Assembly: GCF_052425735.1 (NCBI RefSeq) | Contig: NC_135762.1 | Location: 30,380,001 to 30,444,000, forward strand | Length of the DNA stretch: 64,000 nt | Reading direction: 5' to 3' | Source: Oculina patagonica | Lineage: Eukaryota | Shown: in pieces, positions 18,899-22,417 of the stretch | Numbering within the stretch: position 1 is the stretch's first letter | How the letters are laid out: each line of letters opens with the position of its first letter | Position numbers and translations under genes: made by a program | Notes under the pieces: generated by a model | Database searches by the model: none | Seen by the model: the letters and a program-made list of their open reading frames with translations, nothing else | What the model was told of the DNA's origin: nothing

Positions 18899-21800
18899 AT
18901 GACCACACCGGTATACACTAAAGAACAGCTCAACTACTTCAGAATTTGTTACATTGCTACCAACGTTGTGCCTGAGGGGCTGCGATTGATTTTTAAAGAA
19001 GAATGGGACAACCGTTACAAGGCAACGTTTGGCGAATGGAAGGATACGCCTCAAAATGGACGGGACTTCTTCAATGGTGAATCTGCAGGAACTCAAAGAC
19101 GACATGCACGACTCCTGGCGACAATGATGAACGGTAATAGAGTCGAATGGGATTGTACCATGCTCTTTTACGCCATTCTTCACTCCGATTCTATCCGCGG
19201 ACTGAGTGCAACAGTTCTCTCAAGTGTGGATGATCTCAGAGAATTTCGCAATGAAGATTTTGCTCACATGCCAAAGGGCCAGCTTTCGGATCTACATTTC
19301 AGGGTTGCTGCCCGCAAAGTTGAGATTGCATTTCAAGCACTTGGCCTCTCCACGGTCCAAATCCAAAATATCTGCAAACAGAAAAGTTTCCCAACTGAGG
19401 AGCTTCAACAAGTCATGAAGAAGGTTCAAAACCTTTACCAAGAACTTCACGAAAAGGATGCCAAACTCCAAACCACTGAAGAACAACGTCAGGTTCTTGA
19501 AGTCCAGTTACAGCAAGATGTGTCCTCATTTTGCATTCTTCCACCTAAACCCTCACACGAAGTCGCAACTCGCGACTGCGAGGTTGCTAAAATCACACAA
19601 CAGCTCGACCGGCTGAAGAATGCGAATGAAAGTGGTTTAAGCTACTTATATATCTCAGGTAATCCAGGAAGTGGAAAATCTCAGCTGGCTGGTCTTGTAG
19701 CAAAGAAAACTTATGACGAAGCCATCAAAGACACCGATGCCCCCTCATTTGTAATGACGCTGAATGCTGAAAGCTTAGAAACGCTCTTGGAATCGTATGT
19801 TTCACTGGCGCGGCAGGTCAAGTGTCCAGAATACACTGTCAGTGACACCCGTAACTCAAAAGAAATGAAGATTGACGAGAAAATCAACAACCTGAAGGAT
19901 TTGATTGCTACAAAAATTCAACTTTTTGCCTCGTGGCTCCTGGTGGTTGACAATGTTACAAGTTTATTTCTCATACACGATTTTCTTCCTCATCCTGGAA
20001 ATGAGCAGTGGATAAATGGCCAGTTCCTAATCACGACACAAGACACCTTGTCTATCCCTGCAGAGAGCTCTTTTGTTTCTCACATCAGCATAAGCGAAGG
20101 CATGGAGCCCACAGATGCCAGTTGTTTTTTAGCCAAGATTTCTGGTATCAAGGATCAAGAAATGGAGGAGACAGTGGCGAAGGCCTTAGATTACCAACCG
20201 CTCGCTTTGGCTAGTGCAGGCACTTACGTTAAAAAGATCCGTGAGAGTAAAGTATGTACAACCTTCGGTTGGGAGGAGTATTTGGAAAAGCTAGAAAAAG
20301 GCCTGCGAGTTAGAACTGAAAAGGAACTCACAAACACCAACCCAAGCTACCCCAAATCCATGACTGTAGCAACAAGACTGGCTGTTGAACGGGCGATTGC
20401 GTCTGACAGTGTTGTTAAGAACGCATTTACTCTCCTTTCTGTCTGCTCTCCTCAGCCACTGCATCTCGATATCTTGATGAATTATATTCTAAATGTGGAT
20501 AAGGATCGTGAAAGAGAGGAAATCGGCATTCAGATTCAAGGATACTCGCTACTGTTGTTTGAGGAAAGAGAAAATTGCGTCTTCGTTAGTGTTCACCAAA
20601 TTGTGCATGAGATTATTAAATCTGTAATCAAAGAACAGTTAGAGAGCGATGGAAAGCCTCGCGTTGTTGATGCAGCTGTAAGATCATTCATCCAATTCAT
20701 AGACAGTAAGTTATTAAACAGTTGGTACGAAGATGATTTCCTCACTGAGGGCAAGCATCTTATTCCACACTTGAAAGCCTTGGTTGTTGATATCGAAAAC
20801 TTGTTTGGCGCCGATGTGGAACACCTAAGCGTTTTTAATGACTCACTGTCGTCATTACACTTTCACAAGCTTGGCAAAATTTGCCGCAATCACTGCGAAT
20901 TGTTTTTAGCGAAGAGTTTCTATAACATGGCTCTAGACATTCGGCTGAAAAAGCTTGGACCAGACCATGTTGATGTCGCTACTTCGTATAATAACTTAGC
21001 TGCTGTGCAGCGTGCCTTGGGTGACCTGCAGCAAGCCAAGCAGCTTCATGAAAATGCTCTAGACATTCGGCTGAAAAAGCTTGGACCCGACCATGTTGAT
21101 GTCGCTACTTCGTATAATAACTTAGCTAATGTGCAGCATGACTTGGGTGACCTGCAGCAAGCCAAGGAGCTTTTTGAAAATGCTCTAGACATTCGGCTGA
21201 AAAAGCTTGGACCAGACCATGTTGTTGTCGCCACTACGTACAATAATTTAGCTCTTGTGCAGCGTGCCTTGGGTGACCTGCAGCAAGCCAAGGAGCTTTT
21301 TGAAAATGCTCTAGACATTGAGCGGAAAAAGCTTGGACCCGACCATGTTGTTGTCGCCACTACGTACAATAATTTAGCTCTTGTGCAGCATGGCTTGGGT
21401 GACCTGCAGCAAGCCAAGGAGCTTTTTGAAAATGCTCTAGACATTCGGCTGAAAAAGCTTGGACCCGACCATGTTGATGTCGCTACTTCGTACAATAACT
21501 TAGCTGCTGTGCAGCGTGCCTTGGGTGACCTGCAGCAAGCCAAGGAGCTTCTTGAAAATGCTCTAGACATTCGGCTGAAAAAGCTTGGACCCGACCATGT
21601 TGATGTCGCTACTTCGTATAATAACTTAGCTCTTGTGCAGCGTGACTTGGGTGACCTGCAGCAAGCCAAGGAGCTTTTTGAACATGCTTTAGACATTGAG
21701 CGGAAAAAGCTTGGACCCGACCATGTTGTTGTCGCCACTACGTACAAAAATTTAGCTCTTGTGCAGCATGACTTGGGTGACCTGCAGCAAGCCAAGCAGC

Positions 21801-22417
21801 TTCATGAAAATGCTCTAGACATTCGGCTGAAAAAGCTTGGACCAGACCATGTTGATGTCGCTACTTCGTATAATAACTTAGCTGCTGTGCAGCGTGCCTT
21901 GGGTGACCTGCAGCAAGCCAAGGAGCTTTTTGAAAATGCTTTAGACATTCGGCTGAAAAAGCTTGGACCAGACCATGTTGATGTCGCTACTTCGTATAAT
22001 AACTTAGCTGCTGTGCAGCGTGCCTTGGGTGACCTGCAGCAAGCCAAGGAGCTTTTTGAAAATGCTCTAGACATTCGGCTGAAAAAGCTTGGACCAGACC
22101 ATGTTGATGTCGCTACTTCGTATAATAACTTAGCTGCTGTGCAGCGTGCCTTGGGTGACCTGCAGCAAGCCAAGCAGCTTCATGAAAATGCTCTAGACAT
22201 TCGGCTGAAAAAGCTTGGACCCGACCATGTTGTTGTCGCCACTACGTACAATAATTTAGCTCTTGTGCAGCATGACTTGGGTGACCTGCAGCAAGCCAAG
22301 GAGCTTTTTGAACATGCTTTAGACATTATGCTGAAAAAGCTTGGACCTGACCATGTATATGTCACGAAAATTTATAATAATTTGGCTGCAGTGCACAATG
22401 ACTTGGGTGACCTGTAG
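18899..22417 (+). CDS. HEPN - coiled coil - STAND (NB-ARC-like) NTPase - TPR repeat protein, 1172 aa, intronless CDS
   Basis: N-terminal DZIP3/hRUL138-like HEPN features ([22 protein letters not shown]). Walker A GNPGSGKS, Walker B WLLVVDNV, sensor-1 FLITTQ, GxP-like DYQPLALA, winged-helix SVHQIVH. Eleven full plus one partial 42-aa kinesin-light-chain-type TPR. Confidence 0.9.
   Translation: [1172 protein letters not shown]
20930..22414 (+). repeat. Coding tandem array of 126-bp TPR units (11 full + 1 partial)
   Basis: Unit gctctagacattcggctgaaaaagcttggacc(a/c)gaccatgtt.. recurs every 126 nt from 20930 to 22316. Confidence 0.97.

Follow-up and report, generated by a model that had tools for sequence, protein, structure and literature searches.

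A 64,000-nucleotide stretch of the Oculina patagonica genome (NCBI RefSeq assembly GCF_052425735.1, contig NC_135762.1, positions 30,380,001 to 30,444,000 of the forward strand; the window, in whose numbering positions are given unless another contig is named) contains a single-exon open reading frame (ORF) of 1172 amino acids at 18899-22417 on the plus strand, seen in the ORF listing and supported by Pfam, structure models and Foldseek. Its C-terminus, the 3′ third of the ORF, is an array of nearly identical tetratricopeptide repeat (TPR) units. We consider it likely that this array serves as the sensor of an NLR-like intracellular receptor (STAND, NB-ARC-type), that its units have been homogenised and reshuffled by exchange with one another, and that the residues lining its groove have been diversified. 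The mosaic of the units, the fold of the protein, the distribution of variable residues in the gene family and the turnover of units among close relatives are considered in turn below.

The array is a mosaic of nearly identical units

Tandem Repeats Finder returned a single array at exactly 20930-22414 (period 126, 11.8 copies, 91% matches, 0% indels, score 2354), the same coordinates at which a first-pass annotation of the window had placed a 126-bp TPR array. That annotation counted 12 units. The in-frame translation gives 11 complete units of 42 amino acids (20930-22315, plus strand), on which the repeat finder, translation, Pfam, pairwise identity and the structural model agree, and a twelfth (22316-22414, plus strand) that is truncated and more diverged, with 21 private substitutions, rather than an equal member of the array. 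Directly after it stands a double stop, TAG TAG (22415-22420, plus strand), which the unit alignment places where the other units have their QQ codons. This is followed by an untranslated remnant of unit 12 (22421-22441, plus strand; TKKHYER, the counterpart of AKELFEN), up to position 22439 of which an nhmmer match extends, and downstream of the remnant the similarity to the repeat fades.

Units 1-11 have a mean pairwise identity of 93.1% at the nucleotide level and 88.2% at the amino-acid level (amino-acid range 76-100%, 462 residues). They differ at 19 nucleotide columns, 5 of them synonymous and 14 non-synonymous, the non-synonymous set being held by 11 codons. Seven units (1, 2, 5, 6, 8, 9 and 10) carry the form DVATSYNN (GAT GTC GCT ACT TCG TAT AAT AAC) and four (3, 4, 7 and 11) the form VVATTYNN (GTT GTC GCC ACT ACG TAC AAT AAT), the two differing at D/V15, S/T19 and four synonymous sites. 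These cassettes had been said to travel with their synonymous sites, which is strictly so for three of the sites, linked to D/V and S/T throughout, while the fourth (TAT/TAC) is uncoupled in unit 5 only. The other cassettes listed in the first-pass annotation, RL/ER/ML, A/N/L, RA/HD/HG/RD and QLHEN/ELFEN/ELFEH, were all found, with ML confined to unit 12 and RL/ER in the other units; it lacked ELLEN, carried by unit 5, and N21K, carried by unit 7. Its pairs of identical units were also found, units 1 and 10 being the same even in their DNA, and units 8 and 9 encoding the same protein with one synonymous nucleotide between them.

Units 1-11, with 18 informative sites, were submitted to the four-gamete test, the Hudson-Kaplan estimate of the minimum number of exchanges (Rmin) and a permutation test of neighbour incompatibility of the pairwise homoplasy index (PHI) type (20,000 site-order permutations). 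The four-gamete test is failed by 80 of the 153 informative site pairs, Rmin is 4 exchanges, and incompatibility between neighbouring sites is lower than in the permuted site orders (p = 0.0015). Exchange between units, and a recombination test as the means of checking it, had both been put forward with the first description of the array, and the mosaic is significant. The variation falls into blocks: RL/ER at columns 13-17 (block I), DVATSYNN/VVATTYNN at columns 44-66 (block II, types A and B), A/N/L, R/H and A/D/G at columns 73-86 (block III), ELF/QLH/ELL at columns 112-119 (block IV) and N/H at column 124 together with column 4 of the next unit (block V). All four multi-site haplotype combinations are present both for types A and B of block II with ELF and QLH of block IV and for RL and ER of block I with block IV, which rules out recurrent point mutation as the cause. 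On the evidence of the sequence, exchange between units, whether by gene conversion or by unequal crossover, is the sole good explanation of the mosaic.

The 24-mer encoding VVATTYNN does not occur anywhere else in the 529-Mb genome, and no donor for this cassette was found in 20 paralogous arrays or in the whole genome. The DVATSYNN 24-mer recurs, with one mismatch, in no arrays but the two neighbouring ones that are most similar. Against 93.1% identity within the array, the best unit outside it reaches 91.3% at most and other arrays average no more than 83%; no unit elsewhere is as close to these units as they are to one another. Synonymous diversity within the array (pS) is 0.082, about five times lower than the synonymous divergence (dS) of 0.39 between the N-terminal module of the protein and its nearest known relatives, and the homogeneity of the array must therefore be recent or ongoing.

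The read evidence for the locus consists of short assembled contigs from four runs (X1, X2, X3 and X7, with three organism labels), none of which spans the array. Arrays of 126-bp period and 93% identity are hard to assemble, and X2 has no contigs on 21192-21623, although at a depth of ~8 this gap is uninterpretable. These points would fit an assembly artefact, in which the order and number of the units came from mis-assembly of an array that is longer or otherwise different, or from the collapse of two haplotypes. We regard such an artefact as highly improbable, since the contig is 34 Mb long, the 126-bp register is perfect and the frame is intact over all 11 junctions. Moreover, the same multi-site cassettes are met with in several units, a pattern that errors of collapse do not produce, and similar arrays are present at ~20 other loci and in the independent assembly of a related coral. 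Other letters seen in contigs at 21106, 21107 and 21129 were rejected as polymorphisms, as they represent cross-mapping between units.

The array follows an NB-ARC-like switch module

The only Pfam families at threshold in the protein are TPR families, among them TPR_12 (E 1.3e-199, 647 bits with a cut-off of 30.1, 12 stretches), TPR_10 (E 1.4e-115, 375 bits with a cut-off of 27.5, 11 stretches) and TPR_NPHP3 (270 bits with a cut-off of 100). An AlphaFold 2 (AF2) model of the TPR part alone, with a predicted local distance difference test score (pLDDT) of 88.3, is a regular superhelix of 17- and 19-residue helices. Foldseek matched this model to kinesin light chain 1 (KLC1, 7ai4; template modelling (TM) score 0.85, root-mean-square deviation 2.8 Å, 37% identity) and to OGT (1w3b, E 3e-16), and in a phmmer search of solved chains KLC1 and KLC2 were closest (E 2.5e-34), with 4Y6C and 4Y6W also listed. 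As modelled, the array folds into a TPR superhelix like that of kinesin light chains.

Residues 1-677, modelled with AlphaFold from 35 homologues (pLDDT 78.5), show in order a helical N-domain, a long helix, a P-loop NTPase, a helical domain with the motif QPLALA and a winged helix. The STAND NTPase module (residues 211-580; 19529-20638, plus strand) is identified by Foldseek and by its invariant residues. It comprises the P-loop GNPGSGKS (19658-19681), a Walker-B-like LLVVDN, the helical domain with QPLALA (GxP-like) and the winged helix; Walker A and Walker B are thus both present, and in the model the strands of the NTPase are in their expected places. Among the 35 homologues GNPGSGKS (residues 254-261), Trp346, Leu347, Asp351 and Asn352 are invariant, and Leu348, Val349 and Val353 are at least 90% conserved. 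Searched against the PDB with Foldseek, the NTPase matches Apaf-1 (1z6t, E 7e-12), CED-4, Dark, NRC2/3, Sr35, ZAR1, MalT and the STAND-TPR protein 6mfv, and almost all of the top 50 matches are to Apaf-1, CED-4, Dark, plant NLRs, MalT or 6mfv (E 7e-12 to 4e-6, probability 1.00). Whole-chain TM scores to NLR-type structures are ~0.3 because the orientations of the domains differ. As modelled, the switch module has the NB-ARC/AP-ATPase STAND fold, its membership being given by fold and motifs and not by Pfam, where AAA_16, NPHP3_N and nSTAND1 all score under their cut-offs on the window protein.

The N-terminal domain (residues 8-160; 18920-19378, plus strand) is all-helical. Pfam and PDB sequence searches with it returned nothing significant. 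Within it, however, Arg117-Asn-Glu-Asp-Phe-Ala-His123 (R117-x5-H123, 19247-19267) agrees with the Rx4-6H motif of HEPN domains, and among the 35 homologues Arg114, Arg117, Asn118 and Phe121 are invariant and His123 is at least 90% conserved. Pfam HEPN_DZIP3 (PF18738) matches 7 of the 35 homologues, with a best E of ~1e-3, and the Atlas feature search gave 0.87 against HEPN_DZIP3 clusters, under the 0.9 level. Taking the model, the conservation and the Atlas search together, it is probable that this is a DZIP3-like HEPN domain, of weak resemblance. A long single helix (residues 167-207; 19397-19519, plus strand; DSSP of the model) joins it to the NTPase. Between the NTPase module and the array there is a helical linker and cap (residues 586-677; 20654-20929, plus strand), delimited from the models and from comparison with the closest relatives, P0001 and P0002, which carry a diverged first repeat that the window gene does not have. 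Compared with its nearest known relative, at the dS of 0.39 given above, the N-terminal module has an omega of 0.26, which points to purifying selection on a presumably functional module.

Variation in the gene family is concentrated on the groove face of helix A

Residues were assigned to faces of the repeat from helix boundaries, helical-wheel geometry and published TPR positions. In the model helix A runs over unit positions 14-30, and helix B over 33-42 and 1-9 of the next unit. Pfam TPR_1, TPR_2 and TPR_8 agree in placing TPR position 1 at unit position 17, so that unit positions 25, 28 and 29, the sites of A/N/L, R/H and A/D/G, are TPR positions 9, 12 and 13, as the first-pass annotation had proposed. 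These positions face the ligand: the hypervariable concave-face positions of TPRs are 2, 5, 9, 12, 13, 33 and 34 (Magliery & Regan 2005, PMC1261162), and peptide binding by HOP uses positions 2, 5, 6, 9, 12 and 13 (PMC1261162). On the helical wheel unit positions 15, 18, 21, 22, 25, 28 and 29 share a single arc of 20-160 degrees, which faces away from the conserved Tyr20, Leu23, Ala24, Gln27 and Leu30.

The six canonical groove codons (TPR positions 2, 5, 6, 9, 12 and 13; unit positions 18, 21, 22, 25, 28 and 29) hold 6 of the 14 amino-acid variants of this array (binomial p = 0.009), and D/V15 would share this helix-A face. RL/ER (positions 5-6), S/T19, E/Q38, F/H/L40 and N/H42 lie off this face, E/Q38 and N/H42 being located where helix B is exposed. 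The earlier proposal that the array varies at ligand-contact positions therefore holds for part of the variation, and when the variable sites are mapped, positions 25, 28 and 29 fall on the variable arc of the model and the helix-B variants outside it.

The genome has dozens of comparable arrays. At least 12 are clustered around the window (C5, 30.12-30.66 Mb) and further arrays are found on C1732, C7, C9, C10 and C12. Units were extracted from 20 loci, and the 15 arrays with a homogeneous core were used to count within-array states for each codon. The groove codons have 120 amino-acid and 8 synonymous variants (omega-like ratio 1.46) and all other codons 226 and 154 (omega-like ratio 0.49). 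The difference is strong both for the 15 arrays (Fisher's exact p = 5e-15, odds ratio 10) and for a less redundant subset of 8 (67:5 vs 122:67, p = 1e-6), though these p-values overstate independence, because the counts are of states and not of events, by a method that ignores recombination, and the arrays are related paralogues. Position 25 (TPR position 9) is the only one above neutral expectation after Bonferroni correction, with positions 5 and 18 borderline, and at the scaffold codons Leu2, Ala17, Leu23 and Ala36 nearly all changes are synonymous. Within-array amino-acid variation in the gene family thus appears concentrated on one face of helix A. It is from the family, and not from this array alone, that the strong selection-type signal comes; the array itself is too small for a dN/dS test and cannot on its own prove selection. 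A counting approximation to per-site dN/dS, which had been suggested as a check, separates groove from other codons in the family, whereas in this array there are few sites, with an overall pN/pS of 0.80.

Several points weigh against reading the array as the diversified sensor of an NLR-like receptor. About half of its amino-acid variants lie off the groove face, including F/H/L40 at the canonical packing position TPR 24, and the whole-array pN/pS of 0.80, drawn from 19 variable sites, would fit a relaxation of constraint. Of the 11 units, 5 share one groove code, D-A-R-A, and diversity within the gene is modest. Variation of contact positions between repeats is usual in TPR proteins (PMC1261162) and by itself does not prove diversifying selection. 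R/H (CGT/CAT) is a CpG transition, which could recur by mutation, and the order of the units comes from a single assembly. As for the protein, Pfam NB-ARC (PF00931) remains below its cut-off (12.8 bits, E 0.072, with a cut-off of 23.5), and Pfam HEPN_DZIP3 gives no match to the window protein at E <= 1.

Some of these features could be produced by neutral concerted evolution only, in which unequal crossover has recently expanded and homogenised the array, the differences between units are simply mutations that have yet to be erased or fixed, and no diversification of specificity is under way. It would account for the near-neutral pN/pS and for the half of the variants that are off the groove face. 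The identity of units 1 and 10 and the near identity of units 8 and 9 speak of very recent duplication, and some neighbours in the cluster resemble decaying copies, with stops inside units. Neutral decay should, however, hit all codons, which is not what is seen in the 15 arrays, with 120:8 at groove codons and 226:154 at scaffold and other codons. Furthermore, the N-terminal module is under purifying selection at an omega of 0.26 and the ORF is intact and apparently transcribed. We consider an entirely neutral origin unlikely, and prefer exchange between units combined with diversification of the groove.

Units turn over among close relatives

Searches of the databases gave 1459 homologues at E <= 0.001, and every match with an organism label is from a scleractinian coral (Pocillopora, Stylophora, Montipora, Orbicella, Desmophyllum and Oculina). 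In this genome there are at least 50 paralogues of the N-terminal module. The closest relatives, P0001 and P0002, come from two contigs of another coral (ENA ERZ25067872) and are 80% and 79% identical to the window protein in the amino-acid sequence of the N-terminal module. Their loci, L051 and L052, have collinear flanks and N-terminal modules that are only dS 0.038 apart. The cap repeat and the decayed 3′ repeats are 98-100% identical between them, with the same stop-bearing unit in both, yet there are 12 inner units in L051 and 21 in L052, and identical units occupy different ranks. In both loci the coding array stops in-frame inside a unit and continues as ~8 decaying pseudo-units, much like the TAG TAG of the window, and L052 has an additional earlier stop (KKL*PEH) in unit 14.

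A second pair is found in the cluster itself. L031 (C5:30119500-30125500) and L040 (C5:30606500-30613000) lie 0.49 Mb from each other in inverted orientation, at 98.7-99.7% identity, with 11 units in L031 and 9 in L040; the unit AFDIRQKN... has three copies in the former and one in the latter. This indicates a recent large inverted duplication, or a duplication in the assembly, with gain or loss of units. The members of both pairs may be alleles or young duplicates. Duplications of multi-unit blocks are also seen, as a 5-unit block in L049 and as a 2-unit periodicity in L048 and L035. The differences in unit number and order between close relatives indicate turnover of units in the germline.

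These comparisons bear on whether the array could instead be old and stable, each repeat being a fixed part of one conserved site, so that the mosaic would reflect fixed functional differentiation. Contact positions do vary between repeats in all TPR proteins (PMC1261162), and no variants are seen at the 3′ end of the array, stop included, in contigs of four runs with three organism labels: contigs of X1, X2, X3 and X7 cover 22298 to 22611-22900 with 0-1 differences and none at 22415-22420. A stable old array would nevertheless not be expected to have its synonymous sites homogenised too (pS 0.082 against a dS of 0.39), and close relatives are 9 inner units apart with a different order, while duplicates that are 99% identical are 2 units apart. 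Fixed differentiation is on these grounds very unlikely.

It has also been suggested, in the first-pass annotation, that a repertoire might be generated somatically, by mitotic unequal exchange in a long-lived clonal colony, so that the arrays would differ between cell lineages. There is a substrate on which unequal sister-chromatid exchange could act in mitosis, although these data lend the idea no support, and a similar idea has been raised for fungal NLRs, where it would need deep long-read data (PMC11761791). No join skipping a whole unit was found in the four runs, in which the short contigs have little power of detection, and germline turnover accounts for all of the observations. Somatic diversification seems to us extremely improbable, and turnover in the germline is the process that we retain.

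The arrays most like that of the window, at up to 91% nucleotide identity per unit, are in neighbouring genes, L035/L054 (C5:30470500-30485099) and the rest of the cluster. No match to the HEPN-like/NB-ARC module was found within 1.5-3.8 kb upstream of the neighbouring arrays (3.8 kb for L035). At ~4-9 kb upstream of one neighbouring array there is an ORF that Pfam matches to TRADD-like_N (E 2e-7), and in the gene upstream of L035, the nearest array, the TRADD-like_N ORF is the one that was recognised and an NTPase was not found. The genes that share the N-terminal module of the window (best 60% amino-acid identity) have TPR units 65-71% identical in nucleotides to those of the window. The nearest relatives of the N-terminal module thus seem not to be those of the TPR array, a hint of module swapping or exchange between loci within the C5 cluster. 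Between two TPR genes of the cluster, an ORF of 284 residues on the minus strand (C5:30456820-30457674, L053:5421-6275) encodes a GIY-YIG nuclease domain (Pfam E 1e-4) and may be part of a mobile element.

Gene structure and flanking sequence

Contigs of X1 and X7 join TGCCGAGGCGAGAACAACTTTTAAAGC to 18866/18867. This sequence occurs once in the window, at 16083-16109, and is the 3′ end of an upstream non-coding exon of the 5′ untranslated region (UTR) at 16083-16110 on the plus strand, with GT at 16111-16112. The intron in the 5′UTR (16111-18866, plus strand, GT...AG, 2.76 kb) has the donor GGTGAGT at 16110-16116 and the acceptor caaacag at 18860-18866, and ends 32 nucleotides upstream of the ATG. 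Since the splice junction 16110/18867 is present in the contigs of X1 and X7 while the DNA run X3 is contiguous over 18600-19173, the gene has a spliced 5′UTR and is apparently transcribed.

Shortly after the 3′ end of the gene, at 22584-22630, contig depth jumps (3904 in X3), and in all four runs numerous contigs branch away to either side, which suggests a short, very high-copy interspersed element. Directly downstream, on the minus strand at 24824-27800, two long open stretches of 293 and 608 amino acids look like exons of an unrelated multi-exon gene.

Comparison with known receptors

In fungi, homogenised repeats that are diversified at their contact residues give quick recognition diversity and are the basis of heterokaryon incompatibility. 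The window gene is similar in layout to the fungal HET-E/HET-D/NWD proteins (WD40) and to the NB-ARC/NACHT-TPR proteins of Podospora anserina (Pa_2_10340), in which a STAND NTPase is likewise followed by a repeat sensor. The TPRs of P. anserina have the same 42-residue unit of KLC type, and their crystal structures, 4Y6C and 4Y6W, are the ones among the sequence matches above. The paper describing these two structures (Marold, 2015) is reportedly titled for their high internal sequence identity, and the literature on fungal NLR repeats is said to include studies by Paoletti in 2007 and Chevanne in 2010.

Highly internally conserved (HIC) repeats have been defined as sharing more than 85% amino-acid identity over at least 100 residues (Dyrka 2014, PMC4986451), a class into which the window array falls with 88.2% over 462 residues. 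Only 0.8% of metazoan ANK/TPR/WD repeats are highly conserved internally (Dyrka 2014, PMC4986451), and fungal HIC NLRs are polymorphic in repeat number, with positive selection acting on the concave face that their TPRs have when modelled on KLC2 (PMC4986451). The coral array shares with the fungal HIC NLRs unit identity above 85%, exchange between units, different unit numbers in close copies and variable positions on the concave face of helix A. The analogy to HET-E and other fungal NLRs, drawn when the array was first described, is thus apt, given also the STAND fold of the Apaf-1/CED-4/plant-NLR kind. There are differences too: the host is a scleractinian coral, the effector is HEPN-like and not HET, PNP_UDP or sesB, and in the window array helix B bears a further variable cluster (positions 38, 40, 42 and 5). 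It is in fungi that alleles have been shown to be polymorphic in repeat number and that a phenotype in allorecognition or immunity has been demonstrated.

A catalogue of the NLR-like family of corals and other cnidarians was reportedly published by Hamada in 2013. The window gene belongs to the expansion of NB-ARC-TPR and DZIP3-HEPN NLR-like genes in corals (Emery 2021, PMC8260672; Noel 2023, PMC10236652), where the usual partner of NB-ARC is TPR and N-termini of the DZIP3-like HEPN kind are frequent. The passages of these two surveys found by term search catalogue domain architectures and copy numbers, and near-identical units, intragenic exchange or hypervariability of the groove were not found described in them (PMC8260672, PMC10236652); gene conversion between tandem genes of corals is given as rare in one of them (Noel 2023, PMC10236652). 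A search of full-text literature for internal conservation or concerted evolution of NLR repeats returned fungal and bacterial papers and one passing mention of sea-urchin LRR-NLRs. A sensor of homogenised and shuffled repeats is apparently undescribed in print for corals, the design itself being known from fungal NLRs.

The TPRs of KLC1 and KLC2 (7AI4, 3NF1, 3ZFW) are the best match in sequence and structure and have the 42-residue unit, but kinesin light chains have six diverged repeats without homogenisation at the DNA level, no NTPase and a conserved role in cargo binding. NPHP3 also has a P-loop module followed by KLC-type TPRs, and relatives of the window gene are automatically named nephrocystin-3. 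Orthology to NPHP3 was rejected, with NPHP3_N at 19-22 bits against a cut-off of 24.8 and 50 or more paralogues present in the genome. A single copy is typical of NPHP3, a ciliary gene, whereas the window gene, with its different N-terminus, is part of a large, clustered, lineage-specific expansion. The bacterial Avs and other antiviral STAND proteins, whose effectors are nucleases, have the same order of effector, STAND NTPase and TPR sensor, and by analogy ligand-triggered oligomerisation would be predicted here as well. No close relationship to them in sequence was found, none being looked for. To our knowledge Avs sensors have not been reported as internally homogenised arrays.

Proposed mechanism and significance

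Misaligned units have exchanged repeatedly, by intragenic gene conversion, unequal crossover or both, which has homogenised the array and at the same time reshuffled it. We propose that the exchange takes place in the germline and that new combinations of groove residues are kept by selection, such that every allele or paralogue would present a different binding surface. Binding of a ligand in the TPR groove would free the NB-ARC switch, and the freed protein would oligomerise, bringing together the HEPN-like domains, putative RNases, as the effector. Such a logic would be that of the fungal HET-E/NWD proteins, the NB-ARC-TPR receptors of Podospora and the bacterial STAND sensors of Avs type.

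We know of no established molecular basis for allorecognition in stony corals. A bolder, very improbable extension of the proposed mechanism is that the coral arrays are highly polymorphic determinants of self/non-self or partner specificity, an animal counterpart of het-e/het-d with cell death mediated by HEPN. If this were true, the number and order of the repeats would differ between colonies and would set which conspecific tissues, symbionts or pathogens trigger a response, mitotic unequal exchange might add somatic variants in long-lived colonies, and these genes would be candidate loci for allorecognition in stony corals.

There is a practical warning in these results, as short-read assemblies and gene models of such loci cannot be relied on, and the automatic label nephrocystin-3 misleads. 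For the family, they make the catalogues of coral NLR-like genes testable, with unit positions 15, 18, 21, 22, 25, 28 and 29 as the residues predicted to read the ligand. In its DNA-level mechanism and in the positions that vary, the expanded NB-ARC-TPR family of corals agrees with what is found in fungi, and the concerted evolution of TPR sensors may therefore recur across kingdoms.

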